The notes: generated by a model from the letters alone, not told the origin. A stretch of DNA of 64,000 nt from Blastocladiella emersonii ATCC 22665 (GCA_025594325.1 JANHCV010000015.1:372001-436000); one strand, 5' to 3'; positions 4,174 to 62,506 are shown, numbered from the stretch's first letter. Program-made: numbers and translations.

Positions 4174-5199
4174 ATGGAACCGCACGACTCGATGCAACAC
4201 GACGATGAGCTGATGGAGATCGACCCCGCCCCGGCGTCCACCACCACCCGCCCGCCCAAGCGCCTGCCGCACCCGCCGCGGCAACGGCCGCTGTACGAGA
4301 ACTGCAGCGTGTACGCGCCCGACGGGGTCACGCTGCTCTTCCGGTGCGCGCGCAAGAAGGTCAACTGGTACCTGTCGCGCGACCTCGCTCGCCCTCTGGG
4401 GGACACCGACCCACCTTCAATCGCCCTCACCTTCACCCCCGCGGGCTCGGGCCGTGCGGCCGACGCGTGGTACCTCGAGTCCAAGACCCCGCACTGCGTG
4501 ATCTGCGGGACCCCCGACTCGCTCATCACGGTGAGCGTGGTCCCGCACCAGTACCGGCGGCACCTGCCGCTGTGCGTGAAATCGCATAGCAACCTCGACA
4601 CGCTCCCCGTCTGCATCCCGTGCCACGCGGCGTACGACGCGCAGGTGCGCAAAGCGTGCGCGACGCTCGCCGCGCACTACGGGGTCCCGCTCGAGGGCAC
4701 GCCGTGGATCGCCGCATCCCAACAAGTCCGGAGCGCGCGCAAGGCCGCGGGCGCGCTGCTTAACCCGCGCGCCAAGATCCCGGAGCAGGCGTGCGCGGAG
4801 TTGTGGGGCAAGGTGCGCGCGGTGCTGGGCGACGGTGAGATTGCGGAGCACGACCTCCGCGCGCTCGCCGAGTCGAAAGACGTGGTCCGCGGTCCCGGGT
4901 TCGTCGAGCACGGCGAGGCCGTCGTCCGCGCGGTCCTCGCCGAGCGCGCGCGCGCCGTGTTTGCCACCCACGGCGTACCCGACACGCTCGAGATGGGGAC
5001 GGGGCAGAAGCCGCCGTCCGCGAACGGCGCACACGGACCCACGGGGAAGGTAGGTGTGGTGCGGCCCGTCCCGCTGCCGGCCGACCAGGACCCCGTCGTC
5101 GCGTTCGTGGTCATGTGGCGGAAACACTTTCTCGCCGTCGCGCGCCCGCAGTGCATGTCGCTGCACTACGACGTGCACGCGGACGTGTTCAACCACTGA
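4174..5199 (+). CDS. Stand-alone EXD2 C-terminal (HNH-like, Zn-binding) domain protein
   Basis: LYENCSVYAPDG..LFRC..KKVNWYL, CVICG and VVPHQYRRHLP...CIPCH match the EXD2 C-terminal region. No DEDD exonuclease domain is present. Single exon. Confidence 0.8.
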   Translation: MEPHDSMQHDDELMEIDPAPASTTTRPPKRLPHPPRQRPLYENCSVYAPDGVTLLFRCARKKVNWYLSRDLARPLGDTDPPSIALTFTPAGSGRAADAWYLESKTPHCVICGTPDSLITVSVVPHQYRRHLPLCVKSHSNLDTLPVCIPCHAAYDAQVRKACATLAAHYGVPLEGTPWIAASQQVRSARKAAGALLNPRAKIPEQACAELWGKVRAVLGDGEIAEHDLRALAESKDVVRGPGFVEHGEAVVRAVLAERARAVFATHGVPDTLEMGTGQKPPSANGAHGPTGKVGVVRPVPLPADQDPVVAFVVMWRKHFLAVARPQCMSLHYDVHADVFNH

Positions 5200-16183: not shown

Positions 16184-17461
16184 TCAGTCCGTCACCTCGT
16201 CGTCCTCAACCTCGTCCATTGTCACCACCTGCCGCGCCGCAGTCGCCGCCGCCGCTCGGGTCGACGACGACCGGAACAACTTGGACGCGGTCGTCGCGGC
16301 CGCCGCGTCCTCCTTGGCGCGCTCCTCGCGGACCAGCGTGTCGCGGAGCTGCGCGACCGTGTCGCGGCGGTGCACGGGCGCGTCGATGTTGGCGTTCCAC
16401 AGCCGCACCCACTGCCGGTGCCGGTCCATGAGCTGGTCGCGCCGCCCCGTCGTCGGCAGCCCGTGCTCGTCCAGCAGCGCGCGCAGCTGCGCGTCCTTGT
16501 ACACCGAGTAGAAGCCGCGCGGTAGGCGTTTCGTCGGGATGCCCGACGAGTCGGTGTAGGCGGAAGGGGTGGAGGAGGGGGAGGCGGGGGCGGGGGAGGG
16601 TTTCGGGCGTTTGGCGGGCCGCGCGGGTGCCGCCGCGCGCGATTCTTGCAAGTCGATGCACGCGCCGACGTGCGCGTCTCTCGACACGCCCGCCGGGTAC
16701 CGCTCGTGGCACACGAAGCACGTGTCGTCGTCGTCATCCTCGCCGTCGTCGCCGTTGCCGGCCGGCGTGTCGCGGACGATCACAATGTCTGGGTCATCGT
16801 CCTCGTCGGCTGGCGCCGGGTTCGGCCGCGCGCGTTTCCGCGGACCCGGCGTCGGCGGCGGCAGGCTGTCGCTGCTGCTGGTGCTGCTCTCGGAGCCCGA
16901 GTCGTCGGGGATGGCGGCGTACGAGGCGGCGGCGCGGCGGGGGCGGGTAGCGCGGGAGGCGGACGGCGGGGTGGATACCGCGGCAGCGGCAGCGGATCGG
17001 GTCGAGGACGATGGCGTGGATCGAGATCCAGCGGCGGCGGCAGCGGGTGCAGGTGCGTTCGCGGCCTTGAGCAGGCCCGGGCGCGCAAGGCGGAACGACT
17101 CGACAATGTCGTCGAGCACGCGGTGCGGGACGAGGTCGCGTTCCTTGATGTCCCTCCTACACGTCCCGAAGTCAGCACAACGACGTCGATCCAGTCCCCT
17201 CTAGCGAACGCACCGGCAGCTCGGACACGACGTATCGGTACTCGTGATCCGCTCGCGGATGCAGCGCGAGCAGAACGTGTGCCAGCATCCCACGACCATG
17301 AGCGGCGTCTTGTACAGCTCGTAGCACATGCTGCACCGCAGGTGCGTGTCGAGGTCGCCCGCGTGCTTGTGCGCCGCCGGCCAGTCGGACGGGTCGTCGA
17401 GCGCGTCCAGCGTCGACTGGAATGCCGCCGCCGAGGCTGCAACGAGTTGCGTGTGATCCAT
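16184..17461 (-). CDS. RAD18: Post-replication repair E3 ligase Rad18 (RING, UBZ, SAP); 2 exons
   Basis: RING CSMC...CWHTFCSRC...CPSC; intron 17213-17157; UBZ CFVC...HVGAC; SAP LRALLDEHGLPTTG...RHRQWVRLWNANID. Confidence 0.92.
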
Positions 17462-24875: not shown

Positions 24876-25161
24876 GGTAGTTTTAGCACGATTAAAAGCG
24901 GAGAGCGCAAGCGATCGAAGAGCCGCGAGACGGCCGTCCGCCGCGCGAGGTGTGAGACGCGTTTTGATATCACGTGTCATGTTCGACGTGGCGACGGCGG
25001 GTGTGGCGCAGGCCCTGTGCGAGACGCGCGCGCGAGGGGCAGGGACTGCTCGGCGGTACCCTCCCTCTAGTTGCCAGCGCTCGCTCTCTCCACAAACTAC
25101 TTAAGGCAATGAATTGCGCGCCCAGACTCGCTGCAACGGATCGACCACACCCTCTACTTGA

Positions 25162-27989: not shown

Positions 27990-28193
27990 TGAATGAGTCG
28001 CCGCAGAGGCCTTTTTGTTTGTCTCGTTCTCGAGAGAGGCCGCGAGACGCGTCGCGATATCAGCTGAGGTCAGCGCCGCTCACTTCCCTCCCTCCACGCC
28101 TCGGCTTGCGCGCGTCGCACCGCCCCCTTCCTTTCTCCCCAACCGACTGCCTTGAGCGCAGCACCCACAGACTCCCTGCAACGCACCAACACC

Positions 28194-40447: not shown

Positions 40448-40679
40448 GAGGCGAGGGAGGGGAGAGCTAAAGATAGCCCGAGACGCTGGTTAGCGCTCCG
40501 CCACCCGAGCTACGCTTGCAGCTTGCAGGGCGGCGGGTAAAGATGCGGTTGAGACAACACGTTTCGGGTGAATCGAAGCGCTCGCTGTTCTCGCGACGGG
40601 CCTTGTCGCCCTCATCGCTCGCCGATCCTCGCTCTCTCTCCCAACAACCGACCGCCTTTGCAACGTAGCACACACAAGA

Positions 40680-43058: not shown

Positions 43059-44502
43059 GTGTGGTGTATGACTGTTGCGTTCAGTTCAGTAGCGGTGCAT
43101 GAGCGGGTGAGGTGAGCGCAGAGGGGGAGAGCGGGAACGCGTCGCGGGTGGGCCCGACCACATCAACACGTTGGAGCGACCGGCTGACCAACTCGCCCGC
43201 CCATGACTCGCCCGCCTCGCCGACCGCCGCGTACGCGACCGACCGACGCGGAGACATACGGAACGCCGCGAGCGACGCCACGATAACGCGAATTCGCTCA
43301 CGCCCGCGGATTCGCCATTGGCTCGCCCGTCGCCGAGGCGCGGCTTATCTGGCGCACAGATAATCGCTGGGGCGAGTCATCGTCGTCGCCGGCGGCAGCC
43401 ACGCGCGAGGCGCAGCGCGTGGTGCGCGAGTCACCATCGCCGAGGAGGGGAGGGACGAGAGAAAGGGCGGAGCTGCCGCGTCCTCGCTCTCTCGCGCTCC
43501 GCGCCGCGGTGCAGGATGTGCATGGATGATCGACCACGCGCAACCGGCAAGGGCGAGCACGGCGCGCACATCCCCCACGCCTGGGGAGCGATGCGCAGGG
43601 CGACAGCGCGAAGGCGAGGGCGAGGGCGAGGCAAGTGGGCGCGCGCGCGGACAACCGCAGGGATGGGATCGAGGAGAACGAGGAAGCGAAGCGAGTGGAT
43701 CGACGTACTGATGGAGAGGTGATACACGCGGTGAGGGCGAAGGAGGAAGGGAGAGAGGAAGCGATGCACCTCTCGCTCTTGAACCCTCCGACGGCGACGT
43801 TGACGCTGACGGTGGCGGCGGCGTTCGCCACACACGCGCTCTTTGGCCGTCGACGCGGTTCGCTCGCTAAGGCTGCGTCCCACCCGTTCTGCCCGCCCAG
43901 TGTGGCACAGGGGGCTGGGCCAGAGGTTGGGGGTGATGTCGCCGGTCGCCCGCCGTGGGGCCGCTCGCTTTTCATCGCCCTGCTCGTGCGCTCATCCGCC
44001 CGCTCGGGCCGCTCGGAACACCGCCGGATGCGGGTGCAAAGGTCAGCTGCCCGCGCCGCCCCGCCTCCGCCGGCATCACCGTGCCGGACATGACGCGCGC
44101 CGTGCCGGATCTCGACGCGTTGGTGATGGCGGAGCGGCGGCGGCTTCCGACGCCAAGGGCATCACGGCGAGGATCACGCGCGCCGAGGGCGTCGGTGGCC
44201 TTGCATGAACCCGCCGCGGAGACGAATTCACACGGTGCGGCGGCGCGGCGCGGGGGACCTGCCGCGCGCACGCCGGCTGCTGCAAGGGACGACGCGGCGT
44301 GCATGTCGCGCAGGACACCGGGCGTGAAGCGAAAGCGTGTGGCGCCGATCGTGGCACGTGAGCGATTCCAATGACAGCCCCGCAGCGTGACCCGCAGTTG
44401 TCTCTCGCTTTTCTTGCTCCACCCACCTCCAACCTTGCCCCTCTCGAATCACGGCCGATCCACCGCCCATCGCGCCCGCGCGACTCCATGCAATCGACCA
44501 CC

Positions 44503-45303
44503 ATGCTTGCCCTCTCCATGCATTCTGCCGCGGCATCGCGCGCCGCGGCCCGCCGCCACTTCTCGGCCTCGCCCGCCGCCCTCGGGTTCAACATGGACAA
44601 CTTCTGGACCGGCATCACCAAGACGCGCCCGCGGAAGCCCGCTGGTGACGCCGCCGGCAACAACCGCGGCAACGGCGACGACGTCATGGACAAGATCTCG
44701 GAGATGGCGTCCACGTCCGGCACCGCCGCCGACGGCGGGAAGCCCATGGGCCGCTCGTTTGCGCGCCGCCGCCAGTCCGGCTTCACGCCGCGCGACGGGT
44801 CCGCTGCTCCCTCCCCCGCCGACGGCAGCGCCGCGCCCGCGGGCGACCGTGCGCCGCGCCGCGACCAGGGGCAGCGGTTCGAGCCGCGCGCGCCGCGCAC
44901 GCCCAAGTTCGGCAGCTCCCCCTCCACCTCGATGGGCGCCGGCCGGTTCATCTTCGAGACGTACCAGCCGCCGACGCTGTCCGCTATCCGCGCCGCGCAG
45001 AACCCGTGGACGCGCGACCTCGCGCGGCTGCCGACCGCGCAGCACGGCGAGGTGCTGACGGAGGAGAAGGTCAAGGCGATCCGCGAGGCGATCGGCGGCG
45101 ACTACAAGCCGTACGTCGTGGCGCTGCCCGAGGCCGCGGCCCAGACGCTGTCCGCTGAGCAGCGGCACGTCGCCGAGCAGGCGCTCCGCGTCCTCAACGC
45201 CAATGCGTCGTACAAGGTCGCGGACAAGGTGCAGGTTATCGGCACGATCGTCGAGGGGATGACCGGCGGGGAGGTCAAGCGCGCGGATATCGCGGCGGCG
45301 TAA
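44503..45303 (+). CDS. Hypothetical protein with mitochondrial presequence
   Basis: accaccATG start; MLALSMHSAAASRAAARRHFSAS; backbone-like codon bias; no family recognised. Confidence 0.7.
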   Translation: MLALSMHSAAASRAAARRHFSASPAALGFNMDNFWTGITKTRPRKPAGDAAGNNRGNGDDVMDKISEMASTSGTAADGGKPMGRSFARRRQSGFTPRDGSAAPSPADGSAAPAGDRAPRRDQGQRFEPRAPRTPKFGSSPSTSMGAGRFIFETYQPPTLSAIRAAQNPWTRDLARLPTAQHGEVLTEEKVKAIREAIGGDYKPYVVALPEAAAQTLSAEQRHVAEQALRVLNANASYKVADKVQVIGTIVEGMTGGEVKRADIAAA

Positions 45304-46166: not shown

Positions 46167-46281
46167 TCAGATACGTGGTGAGACGACGTCGTCGAGAACG
46201 AAGCGTGGTGGTAGCTGCTCTGCTTTCCTCGACTCGGCTCGGCCACGGAGCACACTCCACTCTCTGCAACGCATCGACACC

Positions 46282-48281: not shown

Positions 48282-49164
48282 TTACTCTTCTGCACTCGTC
48301 GCGTTGGTGTGCACGCGCAGGACATCGTCGAGCGCCTCGAGCTGGTCGACCATCTTCTCGAGCGCGGCCTCGGCGTCGGGCGTCGCCACAGGCACCTTAT
48401 AGTCGTCGAGCGGCACGTACGCCGAGTCGATAGCCGCGACCGCGTGGCCGCGCGCGCGCAGCGCCGCCGCCGTCGTGTACATGCCGTTGAACGGCGTCGT
48501 GACCACCCACTCCGCCTCCCCCTCGCCGACCTCGACATCCTCGGCGCCCGCCTCAAGCGCGTCCTCGAACACGGCGTCAAACTCGCCGCCCGCGACCGTG
48601 ATCAGGCCCTTGCGCGAGAACATGTACCCGACGCTGCTCAGGTTGCCGTCGGCTTTCGTGAACACCTTGCGCACGTCCTGGAACGCCCGGTTCCCGTTGT
48701 CCGTCAGCGACTCGACCACGAACGCGAACCCGTGCGCTGTCCCCTCGTACAGCGCCGACGTGAGGGTAACGGCGTCGGGGCCCTGCGCCTTCTTGATCGC
48801 GGACTCGATCGACGCTTTCGGCATGTTCAGCGACCGCGCTTTCTGCAGCAGCGCGGCCAGCGCGGCGTTCGCGGACGGGTCCGATGAGCCCGAGGCTACA
48901 TGAGGGGGTGGGTGAGCGGGTGCGACGGGGGCGGGACGGCGACGGTGGAGGCGTACACTTGACCGCGTTGATAATCTCCCGCCCGAGCCGCGAGAAGACG
49001 AGCGCGCGCCGCGTATCGGCATCGCCCTTCTTGTGCCGGATCTTGGACCACTTGTTGTGGCCCGCGGCGAGGGACGGTGTCGCGTGGATCGCGCGGGCTG
49101 GGGTCGCGATCGCCGCCGCGAGGGCGGGCGGGGCGCGGAGAGCGGCGCGGACGGCAGAGAGCAT
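48282..49164 (-). CDS. TACO1: TACO1/YebC-family mitochondrial translation factor; 2 exons
   Basis: AGHNKWSKIRHKKG, NMPKASIESAIKKA, YEG...VESLTDNGNR, LEALDDVLRVHTN; intron 48956-48896. Confidence 0.95.
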
Positions 49165-49181
49165 GGTGTAGATGGGCTGTG

Positions 49182-49205
49182 TTAGCAGCGGTTCATGGGT
49201 TGCAT
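49182..49205 (-). promoter_or_regulatory. Putative uORF MQPMNRC* ending 17 nt before the TACO1 ATG
   Basis: ATG CAA CCC ATG AAC CGC TGC TAA; counterparts lie in front of three neighbouring genes. Confidence 0.6.
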
Positions 49206-49406
49206 AGAGTCGGGTGGCGCAGTCGCGCGGAGATGGCGGGGTCGAGGGAGAGAGAAGGGGAGGGCGGCGGTGTGGCTCGGCTGCTGTTGGCGCAGCGGAC
49301 GGCCGGCTTGGCCATCAACAACTCTATTCGCTCAGGGACGTGGATCGCCGCAAAATCGGTATATAGACACGCCAGGGCGTGGCGACAACGGCCGAGTCGC
49401 CGATCG

Positions 49407-50161
49407 TCAGGACGACGACGACGAGCCCTTGCTGCTCTCAGGTTCCCGTTCTTCTGCTTCTGCCGCAGCAGCAGGAGCGGTGCTCGCGGACTCGGACTCG
49501 GCCGAAGAAGCGCCGGGCTGCACCTGCTCGGACGGCTTCGCCTGTTGCAGTTGTGCGGGTAACGGTTCAGCCTCGACTTGGTACCAGTACGCTGCCGACT
49601 TCGACGCCTGGCCAAAGACCGGCATGATGCGCAAGTCGGCGGCCCGCGCGGCCTCGTCGTCGAGCGGTCGCCTGGATGGGCCCTTGCCGGACCAAAAGTC
49701 GGCGGACCGCCCGCCATACCGCATGCGCACCGTCGGGCCGCGGGGAGGTCGAGGTTTGCTTTTGCTCGGCTCTACGCGAGTGCGAAAAGGTCAGCCGCTT
49801 CCGATTTGCGGGTCACGGATCGGGCGCGAGGGGTACCCTTGTCCTCGGCGTCAGCGGCGTGCTCCTTAGACTTTGAGCAAGCGCGGTTCCGCTTCGCCGA
49901 GTGTCGTTTTGCCCGGTCAGAGTCGACGGGTTCTGCGACGCTCGCTGCCGACCCGGCGCGACTACTGTCGTCGGCCTGCACGGACTCTGGGCGGTTTCGG
50001 TTCCGTGACTTCTTGAGCTTGGCCGTGACCTCCGAGGGTGGTTCTGGCTCATTTTTGGCCCAGAAGCCCTCGATTCGGGCGGCGGCAGCGCACGGCGTGG
50101 CGTGGAGCGCTCGCGCCAAGCAGCGGGCCGAGAGAGTGCGGGTGGAAACGGCGGCGAGCAT
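49407..50161 (-). CDS. Orphan protein 1 with TACO1-like presequence; 2 exons
   Basis: MLAAVSTRTLSARCLARALHATP. Intron 49836-49772 (gtaccc...gctgac...tag) joins in frame to ORF 49407..49730. Confidence 0.65.
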
Positions 50162-50179
50162 CGTAGATCGGGTCCCGGG

Positions 50180-50200
50180 CTAGCAGTTCATGGGTTGCAT
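50180..50200 (-). promoter_or_regulatory. Putative uORF MQPMNC* ending 18 nt before the orphan 1 ATG
   Basis: ATG CAA CCC ATG AAC TGC TAG. Confidence 0.6.
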
Positions 50201-51533
50201 CAAGTGGCGTGGCACAGTCGAGTGGTGGTGGTGGCTCAGGGAGAGAAGCGAGCGCGCGAAGCGGACCGGCCGCGAGGCCACACGGCTCGCTTGCTCCACG
50301 GCCGATCTCGCCCGCCTCGAACGCCGTCCGATGGGATAGCGGTTCCGCCTGCCTCTGATATTCATCGTATTTTCCGAGCGGAGACTCTGGCTAGGCCATG
50401 GCCCAGACGAGAGCGCTGGGGGGAAGGCGGATCGGCCGTGGCCTTGCGAGGCGCCGCGAGACAAAGTTGTCTCGCGATTACCCCGACCACGTGACGGTAG
50501 TTTGAACGCGTTTCGTGACGCGTTTTGCGTCAGAATGATCTCCTACTCGCCAAGCAATTTGACGGTGCGCGTCGCTTGACGAACAGCAGGCTGATTTCGG
50601 CGAGAGACACAGCCACGAGCCGCACAAACTGAGTGAAGTGGTAGGGTGTCTTTGGCTTGGACGGCGAGCAAGGCATCGTTGAGCCGAGCTTCTTCTGAGT
50701 GATTGTAGATAAACTACCTTGATCAATCCGAGACAGAACCTGCGGCGTTAAGGCTGCTGTTGTCAAAGTGCCATGTGGAGGTCGGCGATGATGGATGCGG
50801 ACGAGAATCTTGGACGAAACCCCGCACGAAGGACAAGCCGGAGCTTGATGTGCGAGTGAGACCACCGCAAACTCTTCCGAAAGCAGCTTTTAAATTTATC
50901 TGACCTAGCCCTGAGAAGAGGCGACTCGTACTTTGGCCGGGTCTGTCGTTAGATCTTGTAGAGGTGTGAGCGGAGCAGGCAGGAGGGCAGGGCATTGTCG
51001 ATTAACGTCCGTCGAAAGAGAATTATATGAGCTCAAGTTATTATCTCGGTAAGAATCCCCAGGGCCTCGCGGTGAGAGCCTTCCTGCTGCGCGACGATGC
51101 TTACGCCGCTGCCCCGTTTTGTGTTCGATTATAGCTGGTTTTTCAGGTCATTTTTTTCTGTCCTGTTATCCCTGAAAGGAAATTCTTTCCCCCGCGCGCG
51201 CGAGTTCGTGGGCGACCGCGGGAGACGCGTCGCGAAAACGCGTGACCGCCCACACGACTTGTTTCCGACTTCTTCGCGCTCGTCAACGACAACGACAGCG
51301 AGTGATCAGGTTGGTGATGGCTCATCCCAGCTGTCCTCAGACTTGACTTTCAAGTCCCGAATATGAGATTCTCAAGTCAGAGCTTTTCACTCAAATCGTT
51401 TATTGCGTACTCTTTCAGGAATCTTCCTCTAAATCCTCTTCAAGCAGCAATGATCAGCATTGACGCAAGCTCTTTCTTTCAAATGATCAGACTCAAGAGA
51501 TATGTATCCATTATTCCTTCTGAACACATTCCT

Positions 51534-52553
51534 TTAATCGACAGGACGCCCATCAGCGTCGAGGTAACGCTTGTACTTGTAGCGGTAATCGCGCTCCCCG
51601 TTCGCCTTGAGAGGCCAGCCGTAGGAGACTGCACCCGAAGGATAGCCGTCGCGACCACCTCCCTGCACATCCTGCATGCCATGCATACCTTGCATACCCT
51701 GCATAGCCGGGAGGAAATAGATGGTTGGCGGTAGACGGCGTTTTGCCTCCTCCTCTTTCTGCACGCGCTTTTTACGATCCGCGTCTTCCTGCTCGCGCCG
51801 CAGGCGGTCCTGCTCCTCCTGCTCGCGCCGGCGGATGCGCTCCTGTTCAAGGCGGAGCTGCGCCTGCTGGCTCTCCCACTCGGCCTTCCGGCGCTTCTCC
51901 TCGGCGGCCTCGCGCTGGATGCGCTCGCGCTCGACCTGCTCGCGCAACTTGAGCTCATGCTCGCGCTTGTCCGCCTCGGCCTTCTCGCGCAGAACGCGCT
52001 CCCGGTCAGCCTTCTCCCGCTCGCGTTTGATCTCCTCGTCGCGCTGCTGGTCGCGAAGGTGCATCTTGTGCATCATGTCGGCCATCTCCTTGTCGCGCCG
52101 GGCGTTTTTGGCATCCTGCTCGTCGAGCGCCTTGCGCAGGACCGCCTTCACGTCCGCGGCCGATGGCGTCGAGGTGGCCGACGGCTTGGAGCCGCCCTGG
52201 GCCTGGTTTTTGAGCAGCTCCTCGTAGAGCTGGCGCATCTTCTTGAGCTCCTCCTCGGCAGCGTCGGCGTGGTACTTGTCGGGCTGAGGGACCAGGTCCT
52301 TGGGACCTTCGAACTGGGGGCCGCAGCTGTCGGGTACCGTTGAATGCGCCGAAAGGGACTTGTCGTACTTGCCGCGATGGAAGGGGTCGCGAAGAATGTT
52401 GTAGGCGTCCGTGAGCTCGCGGAACTGCTGGGCCGCGGCCGGGCTTTTGTTGCGGTCCGGGTGGCACGTCAGGGCCTTGGTGCGGTAGGCGCGCCTGATC
52501 TCCTCCTGCGTCGCGCTGCGCGGGACGCCGAGTAGGTCGTAGTGGTTTGGCAT
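51534..52553 (-). CDS. DnaJ-domain protein with long charged (E/R/K) helical region
   Basis: NHYDLLGV...AYRTKALTCHPDRN...FRELTDAYNILRDP...YD; intronless; E/R/K/Q-rich middle. Confidence 0.88.
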   Translation of the reverse strand: MPNHYDLLGVPRSATQEEIRRAYRTKALTCHPDRNKSPAAAQQFRELTDAYNILRDPFHRGKYDKSLSAHSTVPDSCGPQFEGPKDLVPQPDKYHADAAEEELKKMRQLYEELLKNQAQGGSKPSATSTPSAADVKAVLRKALDEQDAKNARRDKEMADMMHKMHLRDQQRDEEIKREREKADRERVLREKAEADKREHELKLREQVERERIQREAAEEKRRKAEWESQQAQLRLEQERIRRREQEEQDRLRREQEDADRKKRVQKEEEAKRRLPPTIYFLPAMQGMQGMHGMQDVQGGGRDGYPSGAVSYGWPLKANGERDYRYKYKRYLDADGRPVD

Positions 52554-52721
52554 TGCGTAGTCGGTGTCTGCTCGCTGCAAGTGGTTCTGATGATGCTAAA
52601 CGAGAGCTAGGGCGGTCCGCCTTTTATCGACAGACACGGTCAAGCTTCCTTTCTTGACAGGGAAATGAAAATGAGTGGACAAAAGGGTGACAAACAGTCG
52701 ACAAAAACCGTGCTGACCCGA

Positions 52722-52764
52722 GTGGCGCAGCGCGTCAAGGATAAGCCACGTGGTGGCGCGCCAC
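52722..52764 (-). promoter_or_regulatory. Two copies of the composite motif (ACGCGCTGCGCCAC and GCGCCACCACGTG) 170-210 bp upstream of the DnaJ gene
   Basis: Plus-strand gtggcgcagcgcgt (52722-35) and cacgtggtggcgcgccac (52747-64). Confidence 0.6.
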
Positions 52765-53603
52765 GACTTAATGCTCGACTGCCGATCTTTCTCGGGATCG
52801 CATGCAGGTACGACACGTCACATTTTTACAAGGTTTTCATTTAGAGAGATCGAACGAAAGAACCGTTTATAAACCATGAAGGATCCGGCGCAGTCGCTCA
52901 AGCTCAACGACTATGCTGAACCTTGACGTTGACGTTGACCTTGGGCTTGGTCATGCTGTTACGCCGAACTTTGACCTTTTGAACAACGATTGAAGTCGCA
53001 CCCGGGCGATCCCCGGTCTTGGCCACCTTGCCGTGCCGCCGCTCGTAGTGTACGGCCTCTTGAACGTAGGGTTTGCGCAGCAGCTTCTCCGCTACGCAAA
53101 TCGTAGAGTGTTAGTGCAAGCAGTGTTTGGATGTCAGATGTAGCCTGCCGTCGTCGAGACAAGCGTCCAAAGCAAGTGCGACATACAAATCGTCGCGTCG
53201 ATGGAACGCGTTGCGCTTCATGCGTTTGATGGGCTGACCCTTCCCCTTCCTGCCCGAGTTGCTTTTTGCGGGAGTCGCAGGTCGCTTGCCGTGTTCCAAA
53301 TGGTCAGCTCAAGGCTTTCCGCTGACCGAGGGACTCATCGCACCGCGCATCAACCCGGCCCATCGCTCATCTTCCACAGCGCGCACACGTCCCCGTCAAG
53401 AGAAGTCGCGTTCATCTCCGCCCAATGCTGTAACCGTGTCCTCAATCCAAAGCTCGCTGATCGCGTCATCAGTGTTGCACCGCTGAGAACAACAACGATG
53501 AATTGACATGGGCGCCAGCAAGTACTGACCGTGCACCGCGAGAACGAGGTGAAGACGCCAGCGCGATCCACGCTTCACTCGTCCCGCGACCCTGGCCAAG
53601 CAC

Positions 53604-54401
53604 TCAACCACGGCGCTCCGGCCGCTCGCGCGTGGCATCGTCCTTGCGGACGCCGTGCTTGGCATTGCGTTTGGCCTTGATGATGGCCTTGAGCCGATCC
53701 TCGGATGCAGTTTCAAAGCGGAGGTTGTCAAAGTACGCGTCGGCGCGGGACCGCCCAGCGTGAGCGAAAGGCGACTCGTCGGAGTGGTCAGACGCGGCAC
53801 GTTGACGCGCCGGGTGACCGTCCGCGTGTGCCGCTGGCGATCTAGGCATGCCGTTGAGATGGGCTACGCAACGACGAGATCAGTCAGCGGGTGGATAACC
53901 GCCCCATGGCTGCGCAGACGGAGACGCTTGCTGCCCGGCAACCCCGCCGACACGAGCAACCGTACCGGGTTCCTTGAGCGCGTCCAGTAAGAGTCGTACA
54001 ACGAGGTCCTCGTTGGGCTCGGTAGGGCTGGACTGCGCAGTTTCCTCCAGCTTGCTGACTACAACGGATGCGCATCGGGGATGTTCACGAGCGGCTGGAT
54101 TAATACCGCGTGCCACCTTTGCCGAGCATCTCCCAAAGCTGTACGAATAAAGCACGCTTGTACCGTTTGTACCGAAATTCAATCGTGAAATGAGGCTGCT
54201 CACCGCCAAACTCGAAGCAAGCGCGGACGCCTTGGCCCGTTTCCCACCGAGGAAACGGCGGTCCAGATTCTTTTCAAGGGAGGAGGGTGGTTTCTTTGGA
54301 TATGTAGCCTTTGAAACCGTCCGGGTCCCGTGCAGCAGCCGCGCATGGCCGCCGACGGGAGCGCGCAGGTGCGCCACGGCGCGGAGGACGGAGGACAACA
54401 T
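53604..54401 (-). CDS. Orphan protein 2 with TACO1-like presequence; at least 2 exons
   Basis: MLSSVLRAVAHLRAPVGGHARLLHGT. An intron (gtacgg...gctgac...tag, about 53966-53862) joins in frame to ORF 53604..53849. Confidence 0.6.
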
Positions 54402-54416
54402 AACGTGATTCTCTGA

Positions 54417-54437
54417 CTAGCTCTTCATGAGTTGCAT
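54417..54437 (-). promoter_or_regulatory. Putative uORF MQLMKS* ending 15 nt before the orphan 2 ATG
   Basis: ATG CAA CTC ATG AAG AGC TAG. Confidence 0.6.
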
Positions 54438-54565
54438 CAAGTGTCCCAACAAAGACATGCGTACGGGACAGCAGCGGAGGAGAAGCTTGTCGCGGGAGCG
54501 GCGACGCGTCTCAGCTCCAGCGCGAGGCGCTCGTCTCGGTTCACCCGGTGACAGCAGGGCCTGCT

Positions 54566-54578
54566 GTGGCGCAACGCG
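54566..54578 (-). promoter_or_regulatory. Half composite motif CGCGTTGCGCCAC about 165 bp upstream of orphan 2
   Basis: Exact 13-mer shared with 21013, 32954, 36746 and 38035. Confidence 0.55.
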
Positions 54579-54825
54579 GACGCCGACAGCTCCAAGCGGC
54601 AGCTCTGCGGGCATCGGTCACTGTGAAGCAGAGCGAGTCGGACATGATGAGTACCGTAGAGAGACCTCGCTATCGTCGTGCAAAAGTCGGAGAGGATCGC
54701 AGCATGTAGATAGACTACCAGCTCTGACACTTTCCAGTCTCGCGCCAACCGCAGGTCGTCCGACGCCGCTTCGGCCTGTCCGCGCCCTCGCAAGTGAAGC
54801 TCTTTTGCCGACGATACATCCTGCT

Positions 54826-55487
54826 TCATTGAGAAACGCGTATATTGCCAGGCGTAACGAAAATCGTCGCCACACCCTGCAAGCGAGAGCGACACCCGCG
54901 CGTGATGGCGAGGGAGATGAAGTCTACCCGCCGTGATTCTTGGCTAAACAATGACGCAAACCGATGCAATGAGTGGTGGCTCACTTCTACACGTCTGGTA
55001 CGCGACAAGCACGTACCGTCATGGTACATCTGCATCAAGCGGGCAACGTCCTTGTCGCCTAGCTTTCTGACGCTACTGCAACTACCCGGCTCGGACCGCT
55101 CCCAGAAATCTTCCAGTCGCGACTTGGTAGCAGGCTCGGCTTCCGTAGGAGCCGGGATCTCGCCCGCTACACGCAAGGAATCGCATCGTGGCGCGTGAGT
55201 GGGCGACAGTGTGGTTCTAGCGCTGGTGGCGTGGAGGCGAACGCACACTTGATCTTGGCGCTGATCATCCCAATCAGATCATTCAAGTCGGCGCCAGAGT
55301 CGTCCAACGACTTGACCCGCGGGTCGGCTGGTTGAGAAGGCGCGCGAGACTTCGTGTCGACGACAGACGGGTCGTTCTCTCCAAGGCCGCGTAGCGCGTT
55401 CGACACCGCGGGTCTGGTCGCGTGCAGGTGGCGGGCCGATTTGAGGGCGGGCGCGCGGATGGTGACACGGAGAGTCGAGGACAGCAT
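54826..55487 (-). CDS. Orphan protein 3 with TACO1-like presequence; spliced, 3' end uncertain
   Basis: MLSSTLRVTIRAPALKSARHLHAT. A gtgcgt...gtag intron joins to the GEIPAP...RLEDFWERSEP frame; a further gtacgt donor follows YHD. Confidence 0.55.
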
Positions 55488-55505
55488 AATAGGGCTCTCT
55501 GACAG

Positions 55506-55523
55506 TCAATTCATGAGTTGCAT
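55506..55523 (-). promoter_or_regulatory. Putative uORF MQLMN* ending 18 nt before the orphan 3 ATG
   Basis: ATG CAA CTC ATG AAT TGA. Confidence 0.6.
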
Positions 55524-55876
55524 CAAGTTGTATCGTCCGAAGTGGGGACGTTGCATCGATCGAGGGAGAGGGCGACGCGACCGCGACCTGCCGCGCGACT
55601 GACCCGGCTGAGCTGGCCTCTCAGCGCCAAGTTTGAGTGTGCGAGGAAACGCGCGACCTGAAGCAATCCAGGGATAGAGGCCGGAAACGGTGGCGAGACG
55701 TCGGCGGGTGCACCGACCAGCGCGTCGGCCGCGGCCTCATCGGCCCGGTCGTCGTCGGCCTTGCTCCTCACCGACCTCACCCGCTTCGCACACAACAACC
55801 ATGGACAGCGACATCAAGAACCAACCAAGAACTTTTATGTATTGAGACACTCCCAAACCCATCCGCACCTCCCCGC

Positions 55877-61225: not shown

Positions 61226-62506
61226 GGTCGCTGTGGAGGTGGAGGTGGTGGAAGCAGAGCAGCCGGGCCTAGAAGTCGGGGTGGAGTGGGTGGCGCAGGA
61301 TGCATGAGCCACCATGCAGAACGCGGCAGCAGCAACGGAACGCACCTCGCGGGGCGGCGTCCGCGGCAGCCGTCGACGGTAACGAGGCGAGCAGCGCCGT
61401 AGCGGGAGCAGTCGACGAGATCTCAGTGCGGGTGGGGCCGGCGCAGAGCGGATCGTGCGGGCGTGGTGCGTGTGGGAGCGGGTGAGACCGCGGCAGAGGT
61501 CACCGAATTCGGTCGGTCGTGGCGGGCAGGGCGGGCGGCACAGCAGCCGGCGGGGGGTCGATGCGTTGCAGGTAGTCGTGGGTGCGCAGCGCGGCGGGTT
61601 TCAGATGATACGCGCGCGATCGGCAGCGTGCGGTTCCATGGGGAGGAGAGGGAGCGGGAGCAGAGCGGAGCAGAGAGCGGAGCGTCGGCCGTGGAAGCGG
61701 CGCGGTGACGTCGCAGCAGCCGACGCGTGGCTCCAGAGTCGAAACCCGTCACCTGACCGCGGTTTCAAGCCGTTTTGGCCGCTGTCTCCCCCTTGCTGCA
61801 GCGAGCGCCACACGCACGCAGCGCTGCCGCCACCGCCGCTGCTGAACGCCCTCGCTCTCCCCCCCTGCTTCGCCACCCTCGCTCGCTCGCCCCGCCGTGC
61901 GACTAGACCAGCCCGAATTTTCGGTATGCCGCGTCTCGCGCTGCCGCCCATGCATCTGCTTCCATGCCCTCCTCCTTGCCCTATCGGATCGGTCCCGCGG
62001 TCGGCGGTCGGCGGTGGCCGCGCCAGCGCCACGCCGTGACATGACATCGCACGCGCGGCCATGGGAACTCTGCGTCGCCCCAGGGGCTGCCCTGCCCCGG
62101 TGCGAGACACCGTGTCTACGCCCCCGCAACACTCGGACGCCCGCCGCACCTTGTCTGTGCCCGCCCAGGCCGCCCGTTGACCTGGGTGGGACCCCGCCCC
62201 TCGGATCTCCGTCGGCTCTTGGCGCTCTGGTCCGCCTTTGGTTGGGCCTGCGTGTTGATGAAGTAGCGCCCTCCTCCTCGTCGCCCCCTCGCTCTCCTTC
62301 CTACCCTCACAACCGCGCAGTGATACCCCCGCCGTGGCCGACCCGCGACGACCAGGTCCGCACACCCACGTCGCGCCGATCCCGCTCCATCGCCATCGCT
62401 CGCTCGCCCGCCCGAGTCCCCCACGCTGACCAACCCGACCCGACCCGTCTAGGCCCCATCCCCTTTGACGACGTGATTGCCTGAGTGATCGACTACCACC
62501 TCCGTC

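Follow-up and report, generated by a model that had tools for sequence, protein, structure and literature searches.

A variant of a start-proximal sequence box and a shared presequence at TACO1 and neighbouring loci of Blastocladiella emersonii

We describe here a group of related 5' ends around the TACO1 gene of Blastocladiella emersonii ATCC 22665, in a 64-kb window of contig JANHCV010000015.1 (GCA_025594325.1) whose numbering is used throughout. Four genes, TACO1, g2, g3, and g4, are the focus of the analysis; all lie on the minus strand, and four copies of a short sequence block precede them within 6.4 kb. TACO1 (a TACO1/YebC gene, H9P43_009656, P0001; 48282-49164) is annotated and encodes 273 residues from two exons (exon 1, 48957-49164; exon 2, 48282-48895) separated by an intron at 48896-48956, and the model built here reproduces that annotation exactly. 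Its product contains the YebC N- and C-terminal domains, and residues 1–34 form an N-terminal extension that ends in RAIHAT; the TACO1 family has a mitochondrial role. The exact protein is encoded on a single contig, that of the NCBI genome. The other three genes had been put forward as orphans (orphans 1 to 3 respectively), and none is called in the NCBI annotation. The g2 model encodes 229 residues from an ATG at 50161 (49407-50161; exon 1, 49837-50161; intron, 49772-49836; exon 2, 49407-49771). The models for g3 (231 residues, ATG at 54401, 53604-54401, intron 53864-53965) and g4 (136 residues, ATG at 55487, 54924-55487, introns 55167-55246 and 54944-55016) are tentative. A further gene, which becomes important below, is the annotated single-exon gene P0122 on the plus strand (266 residues, ATG at 44503; 44482-45303 including its leader). 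The public annotation is an ab initio one produced with funannotate; the text of the paper mentions no RNA-seq or transcriptome evidence (PMC9730499).

The block ATGCAACYCATGAA is present in four exact copies in the 64 kb, all on the minus strand (49192-49205, 50187-50200, 54424-54437, and 55510-55523, by exact pattern search), compared with 0.00 expected from shuffles. As the original prediction had stated for TACO1 and three same-strand neighbours, each of the four copies is situated just upstream of an open reading frame (ORF); the distance to the ATG is 36–41 nt. The conserved segment is longer than noted earlier, extending to ACT(C/T)(T/G)ATGCAACYCATGAA, and reads GACTCTATGCAACCCATGAA at TACO1 (49192-49211), ACTTGATGCAACCCATGAA at g2 (50187-50205), and ACTTGATGCAACTCATGAA at both g3 (54424-54442) and g4 (55510-55528). 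Degenerate copies are not in excess in the window, with three more at an edit distance of 2 or less where 3.0 are expected. The block contains an upstream ATG (uATG) that opens a short upstream open reading frame (uORF), and the four uORF readings given earlier are all confirmed: MQPMNRC at TACO1 (49182-49205, out of frame with TACO1), MQPMNC at g2 (50180-50200), MQLMKS at g3 (54417-54437), and MQLMN at g4 (55506-55523). The uATGs are 41, 39, 36, and 36 nt from the main ATGs in that order, and the uORFs end 17, 18, 15, and 18 nt before them. A second ATGCAAC lies upstream of g4 at 55550-55556. Three different stop codons had also been noted, and these are real, although their independence was overstated: the TAA and TAG codons of TACO1, g2, and g3 occupy a homologous GCTA(A/G), so that only two independent stops are represented, the other being TGA.

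The constraint on the block acts on nucleotides and not on the uORF peptide, and the block behaves as a nucleic-acid site. Within ATG CAA CYC ATG AA and the three to five bases 5' to it every base is fixed, apart from a single variable position that swaps proline for leucine. The length of the uORF and its downstream codons vary among the copies, its silent positions are invariant, and the free synonymous change expected of conservation at the peptide level is not seen. Neither do context and spacing resemble those of a regulatory uORF, as position -3 of the uATGs is occupied by T or C and the spacer is 15–18 nt; all four main ATGs have a purine at -3, with that of TACO1 in the consensus CACC-ATG, and ACCATG is an enriched start context in this genome. 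A spacer of 15–18 nt is too short for efficient re-initiation after scanning, and a translated uORF would therefore mainly inhibit. The proposal that a re-initiating uORF provides shared translational control is thus not supported, given the conservation at the level of nucleotides, the poor uATG context, the short spacer, and the generic nature of the core described below. No shared or conserved RNA structure is predicted in the leaders. Comparison with Allomyces also failed to bear the proposal out, in that the TACO1 leader there lacks the motif and has no uATG at all in 100 nt; motif and orphan-like ORFs are both absent from the Allomyces TACO1 neighbourhood.

What forms the core of the uORF is a generic box close to start codons, (T/C)GCAAC. 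The consensus of the box is approximately GACTC-NN-(T/C)GCAAC-SCATSRAC, it is strand-specific, and it occurs 10–45 nt 5' of start codons. In the leaders of annotated neighbours, TGCAAC-like words stand 14–45 nt ahead of many ATGs. A listing of TGCAAC across the window places the box, with flanks in common, 12–30 nt before the starts of unrelated genes, namely a kinase gene whose product begins MGNNIT (25132; box at 25125-25137), PTPA (28177; 28170-28182), GNAT (40659; 40657-40664), and CTNNBL (46265; 46258-46270) on the plus strand, and a Rossmann-type ORF (32165; 32165-32160) on the minus strand; a gene at 4193 (4186-4198, plus strand) also has it directly upstream. Among 20 annotated non-focal starts from three loci, including 9.6 kb outside the window, nine have [CT]GCAAC on the sense strand between -60 and +30 compared with 1.2 expected (binomial p 7e-7), and the antisense control gives two of 20. 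A matrix built from seven unrelated sites, none of them from the focal genes, has as its top non-training hit the TACO1 site GACTC-TA-TGCAAC-CCATGAAC, which scores 19.8, the highest null score from ten simulated windows being 16.0; the TACO1 block thus joins the generic GACTC-NN-TGCAAC box to a local CCATGAA variant. CT-rich tracts and ACCATG are likewise enriched at starts, and the focal leaders have both. In Allomyces the box lies 12–15 nt before the ArsA/Get3 ATG in three loci (L004–L006). Strand-specific recurrence at a narrow distance before unrelated starts is what a generic start-proximal element would display, and the box is most likely part of a core promoter or the extreme 5' end of the mRNA; it may be an initiator or leader element of the Blastocladiomycota. 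A literature search found no description of a GACTC-NN-(T/C)GCAAC motif or of B. emersonii start sites.

We also note that two small genes with signal-peptide-like starts have TATAAA 75–85 nt before the ATG (locus L007, 16720-16797 and 20715-20800, plus strand). In one of them GACTC follows the TATA box by about 30 nt, which is the expected position of the start site, and the TATA boxes of the two genes suggest leaders of about 45 nt.

The N-termini of the four focal proteins share a presequence-like peptide ending AR.[IL]H[AG]T, as predicted. This motif has four matches in 127,996 six-frame positions, which are precisely the four focal N-termini, and it is encoded with synonymous differences among the four genes; the shorter [IL]H[AG]T occurs seven times in 128,000 positions, four of them at the focal genes. 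In g3 the presequence is MLSSVLRAVAHLRAPVGGHARLLHGT, and that of g4 ends ARHLHAT. The presequence peptides are alike beyond composition in five of the six pairs (0–11 of 500 shuffles), with g2-g3 at 44 of 500, and the mature parts of the four proteins have no similarity beyond composition. The presequence prediction that had been suggested as a check finds a basic, acid-free N-terminus together with a motif of the mitochondrial processing peptidase (MPP)/Oct1 type. All six N-termini considered, those of TACO1, g2, g3, and g4 and those of family X from both genera (see below), fit R-x-[FIL]-x-x-[STG], are rich in arginine, alanine, leucine, and serine, and contain no acidic residue in the first 30–47 positions. 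These features have limited specificity, in that 49 of 237 ATG-initiated ORFs (21%) pass the charge test and eight of 237 pass charge and motif together. The shared N-terminus is a likely mitochondrial targeting sequence that may direct import.

The family to which the presequence belongs is represented by Allomyces AMAG_04555, here termed family X, with orthologues in three Allomyces species (E 1e-26 to 1e-33, with P0122 as the query). X is arranged tail-to-tail with a methyltransferase gene (Methyltransf_11/23) in both Allomyces and B. emersonii, and this synteny identifies P0122 as the B. emersonii orthologue. The four Allomyces orthologues start MLAAA.TRAPRRLLHAT..GGFWAAL, and the presequence of P0122 ends ARRHFSAS, followed by DNFW. 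The leader of P0122, GACTCCATGCAATCGACCACC-ATG, provides a fifth related leader and presequence on the opposite strand, from 44482-44505; the four leaders reported earlier stand, and the fifth had been missed. Members of the family are 235–266 residues long; the presequence is accompanied by a GFW motif, a basic middle region that is disordered, and a C-terminal domain that is conserved. The family has no match in Pfam, NCBIfam, or the PDB, and wider fungal relatives are suggested by an atlas search (score 0.94).

The relationship of g2 to family X is clear in its N-terminal half. Alignment of g2 with P0122 is collinear and has a Smith-Waterman (SW) score of 87 compared with 44±8 (0 of 1000 shuffles), and alignment with Allomyces X (P0123) has a yet higher SW score of 118 compared with 45±8 (z 9.5) over residues 1–124. 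The latter runs uninterrupted across the predicted GT-AG intron of g2, in which there is a branch-point-like CTGAC, such that DK|EPSKSKPRPPRG pairs with RREPTKFVQRPPRQ. The N-terminal half of X (presequence, GFW, and the basic region ending EP.K..RPPR) is thus collinear in g2, and because the alignment passes through the predicted splice junction we infer that g2 is a real, unannotated X paralogue with a different C-terminal half, and that it is very probably protein-coding. The X C-terminal domain (FETYQP..NPW..LNANASY..EGMT.G.VKRAD; profile positions 140-238) gives no hit in 49.3–55.7 kb, which excludes, for that domain, the orphans being decayed full copies of X. The C-terminal half of g2, encoded by the second exon, has a single hit among 1.84 billion representatives; this hit, P0121, is a repeat protein in which ten weak repeats add up, and was rejected as spurious. 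The three neighbours had all been described as orphans, a description that no longer fits g2 and that holds for g3 and g4, which are without relatives. They are not decayed copies of TACO1, as a profile of 120 homologues finds no YebC domain or remnant in any frame of g2, g3, or g4.

The leaders of TACO1 and g2 align over approximately 130 nt at 73% identity (z 14), so that the flanking alignment reported earlier between TACO1 and the gene at 50161 is real. The g3 and g4 leaders align over approximately 52 nt (z 11–13). Leader alignment scores are 61 for TACO1-g2, 45 for g3-g4, 39 for g2-g3, and 34 for g2-g4, and the background of 99 leader pairs other than those between focal genes has a maximum of 42; only TACO1-g2 is clearly above this, with g3-g4 marginal and the other two within it. 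In coding DNA no focal pair is significantly alike, the similarity being confined to the leaders, and a likeness between the ends of exon 1 in TACO1 and g4 was examined and is not significant.

The direction of transfer is indicated by Allomyces, the one genus available as an outgroup. The first 60 residues of TACO1, g3, and g4 resemble those of Allomyces X with z of 4.1, 3.6, and 2.0 respectively, whereas the first 60 residues of Allomyces TACO1 compared with Allomyces X give z of 0. The TACO1 presequences of B. emersonii and Allomyces are unrelated (121 of 1000), whereas the mature parts are 54% identical. The putative donor and recipient have leader DNA in common, and in the outgroup the donor has the cassette and the recipient lacks it. 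Since Allomyces X already has the presequence and Allomyces TACO1 does not, TACO1 is more likely to be the recipient of the cassette than its source. The original prediction of a TACO1-type cassette, with the TACO1 leader as its source, is therefore reversed, the presequence being ancestral to family X; of the serial duplication proposed with it, what survives is that the four 5' ends are related beyond chance, and TACO1 is probably not their origin. Local duplication is the most economical account of the related 5' ends, and we infer both the duplication and its direction.

The explanation that we favor, with a probability of about 0.55, is that the 5' ends consist of a generic box variant and an X-family presequence that spread locally and were captured by TACO1. 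The 14–19-nt block would be the local form taken by a strand-specific element that stands near starts across the genome, and the four genes would share this variant, a short leader, and the R-x-(I/L)-H-(A/G)-T presequence as a consequence of descent from one cassette. The owner of the cassette would be family X, an old presequence-bearing Blastocladiomycota family (AMAG_04555; local orthologue at 44503-45303), with g2 as an intron-containing X paralogue, and TACO1, directly downstream, would have swapped its ancestral 5' end for a copy of the cassette. In g3 and g4 the cassette would stand ahead of relative-less sequence that is putatively coding. The uORF is probably incidental: the uATGs would be by-products of the box, with an A that chances to precede TGCAAC and with CATGAA as a variant of the common CATCGA, and if transcribed they would give only a weak constitutive dampening.

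Several observations weigh against this explanation, and they bear on what the uORF does, on whether the 5' ends share descent, and on whether the downstream sequences are coding. Five of five family members, the four copies and the X leader, retain the A on which the uATG depends, compared with one of six other start-proximal boxes, and each of the four uORFs still terminates ahead of the main ATG, by two independent solutions, GCTA(A/G) and TGA. The ATGCAA box shares its frame with the ORF in two further genes, X (at 44488) and the gene at 4192, and if it were a true start codon there the box would lie inside the mRNA; leaders of the approximately 45 nt suggested by the TATA-containing genes could also include the block. 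These are the arguments for an alternative in which the block is part of the transcript and a short uORF begun at each uATG adjusts how TACO1 and its neighbours are translated, under a shared post-transcriptional control of mitochondrial proteins. We regard this as unlikely. The uORF peptide varies between proline and leucine while its silent positions do not, the uATG context is poor and the spacer points to plain inhibition, the core is a generic box at unrelated genes, the Allomyces TACO1 leader is devoid of uATGs, and a stop within seven to eight codons is expected by chance in about one quarter of lineages, as estimated from base composition.

Common descent is itself open to challenge. 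Unrelated box-bearing leaders score up to 42 because promoter grammar is shared, and the leader likenesses of g2-g3, g2-g4, and g3-g4 are therefore weak evidence of descent; for g3 and g4, descent consequently rests on the rare peptide motif, the identical 19-mer, and the one-strand clustering in 6.4 kb. The motif R-x-[FIL]-x-x-[STG] is common and presequences evolve fast, such that some convergence is possible, and a profile of family X gives g2 a score of only 5.6 bits. An account without duplication would have independent genes for mitochondrial proteins sharing a regulon-specific box variant, YCATGAA, and a convergent MPP/Oct1 motif, and it could draw on the presence of R-x-[FIL]-x-x-[STG] in all six presequences, on the loosely similar TGCGAACCCATCA of the PPR gene, and on box sub-variants of 14–20 nt that are common to unrelated, unlinked genes (TGCAACGCATCGAC to CTNNBL and a site at 61570, TGCAACGTARCACAC to GNAT and the 32137 ORF). 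Nonetheless it is improbable: the four copies fall in 6.4 kb on one strand with none elsewhere in the 64 kb, the TACO1-g2 likeness covers 130 nt and far exceeds the background set by promoter grammar, the motif [IL]H[AG]T is seldom met with, and the variant is absent from Iso_dh, PPR, and X itself, the window's other likely mitochondrial genes.

The coding status of the neighbours is the remaining consideration, and we put the chance that g3 and g4 are protein-coding at about even. A search of 5.8 billion proteins finds no g3 homologue at E≤10, and the atlas hits of g4 are all below the level of reliability and serve as leads only. Codon-usage scores of the g2–g4 exons are -0.45 to 0.11 compared with 0.36–0.55 in neighbouring real genes, the AlphaFold models are poor (predicted local distance difference test values of 47 and 54) and insufficient for a fold search, and ORFs longer than 100 residues are plentiful in all frames of the window. 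Together with the missing ab initio calls and the spurious hit of the g2 C-terminal half, these data are consistent with g3, g4, and possibly g2 being non-coding, decaying partial duplicates of the X 5' end in which the box gives rise to transcripts that are non-coding or spurious; a GC content of 60–67% would then account for the long ORFs as by-products. We consider this a tenable but doubtful alternative. In all six proposed exons it is the proposed frame that has the highest GC content at third codon positions and the best codon score, the presequence peptide is retained despite synonymous change, the g2–Allomyces X homology passes through an intron with recognizable signals, and a perfect 19-nt block amid randomised flanks points to loci still under selection. 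Similarity of g3 and g4 to family X is confined to the presequence, plus an FW motif in g4: LEDFWERSEP of g4 resembles RIEGFWAKNEP and SADFWSGKGP, both of g2, and GGFWAAL of X, and the overall g2-g4 score is marginal (26 of 500). A more ambitious form of the local capture that we favor, in which the cassette was copied in tandem several times, one copy replacing the TACO1 5' end, with g3 and g4 as new lineage-restricted mitochondria-targeted proteins and the ATG-bearing box as a shared weak uORF brake, is quite unlikely. If true, it would be a natural case of the modular birth of organelle proteins.

Events of this general kind are already known, and the B. emersonii cassette is a new example of a copied presequence (PMC2631504). 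In the plant cases of Kadowaki et al. 1996, summarised in PMC2631504, the presequence donors were atp2 for rps11-1, hsp70 for sdh3, and hsp22 for rps10. The likeness is that a targeting peptide and upstream non-coding DNA reappear before an unrelated mature protein, here the X leader and presequence before TACO1. The plant cases followed organelle-to-nucleus transfer, however, whereas TACO1, the apparent recipient here, is a long-standing nuclear gene with an earlier presequence of its own; moreover, the donor is directly upstream in tandem, and import is putative. The known uORF systems GCN4/CPC1 and CPA1 also use short upstream ORFs, which here are in the last 40 nt before the main ATG, but there is no peptide conservation as in an attenuator of the CPA1 type, and a single uORF with a spacer of 15–18 nt is unlike a re-initiation ladder of the GCN4 type. 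From uORF-control systems in general the locus differs by its poor uATG context and in having its conserved letters belong to a generic box.

Short-leader protists have Inr-type motifs too. A parallel for the box is in the oomycete initiator (INR) and flanking promoter region (FPR), presented in PMC3599244 as lineage-specific core-promoter elements near the start codon. As presented there, these are likewise short strand-specific motifs at a narrow distance before many unrelated starts; the B. emersonii box differs in that it is known as a sequence motif only and may lie in the 5' untranslated region, not at the start site.

For the presequences the comparison is with the 'R-10' class, R-x-(F/L/I)-x-x-(T/S/G), which is processed in two steps by MPP and Oct1/MIP. 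All six N-termini fit this class in their sequence features.

The gain from the cassette is modest, consisting of a fungal example of a gene that would have swapped its mitochondrial targeting front end with that of a neighbour, and perhaps also of small mitochondrial proteins that arose anew behind a copied front end. More promise lies in the general (T/C)GCAAC box, which in practical terms could assist the placement of start codons and promoters. A second practical point for this emerging model fungus is that its public annotation lacks at least one real gene, g2.

Two other origins for block-like sequences were considered and rejected. The block is not a dispersed repeat or transposon end, as the contigs of the source DNA runs contain no other match of at least 18 nt to the TACO1 or g3 block; one of these contigs has the left half only, CCACTTGATGCAAC, with a different right half. 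Apparent degenerate copies at the Iso_dh and PPR genes are look-alikes at background level, with an edit distance of at least 3.

Short uORFs beside (T/C)GCAAC boxes may perhaps be common in the B. emersonii genome. The Iso_dh leader has a mini-uORF of its own (ATGCACCGCTACTGA, 43 nt before the ATG; 43086-43100, minus strand), as does the leader of a zf-MYND gene (ATGAAACGCTGA, locus L007, ~16200-16230, minus strand). At a gene for a 341-residue protein the annotated start (4174, plus strand) is upstream of the GACTCGATGCAAC box (region 4174-4215), and translation may truly begin at one of two in-frame ATGs, 4192 or 4213; in this region ATGAGCTGATGG reads Met-Ser-stop and overlaps the 4213 ATG. 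A perfect TGCAACGCATCGAC box at 61565-61570 (minus strand) is situated 345 nt 5' of the annotated formin start (61225), and either an upstream exon absent from the annotation or a long leader may belong to the formin gene.

Between the focal genes, a lower-GC island (58–61%) around a J-protein gene (50300-51500 and 52600-53550) contains no annotated genes, and a possible two-exon ORF for a small basic protein lies within it at 52907-53299 (minus strand) and has no match in Pfam. At 51217-51249 there are short ACGCGT-rich words that are also present on several other contigs.

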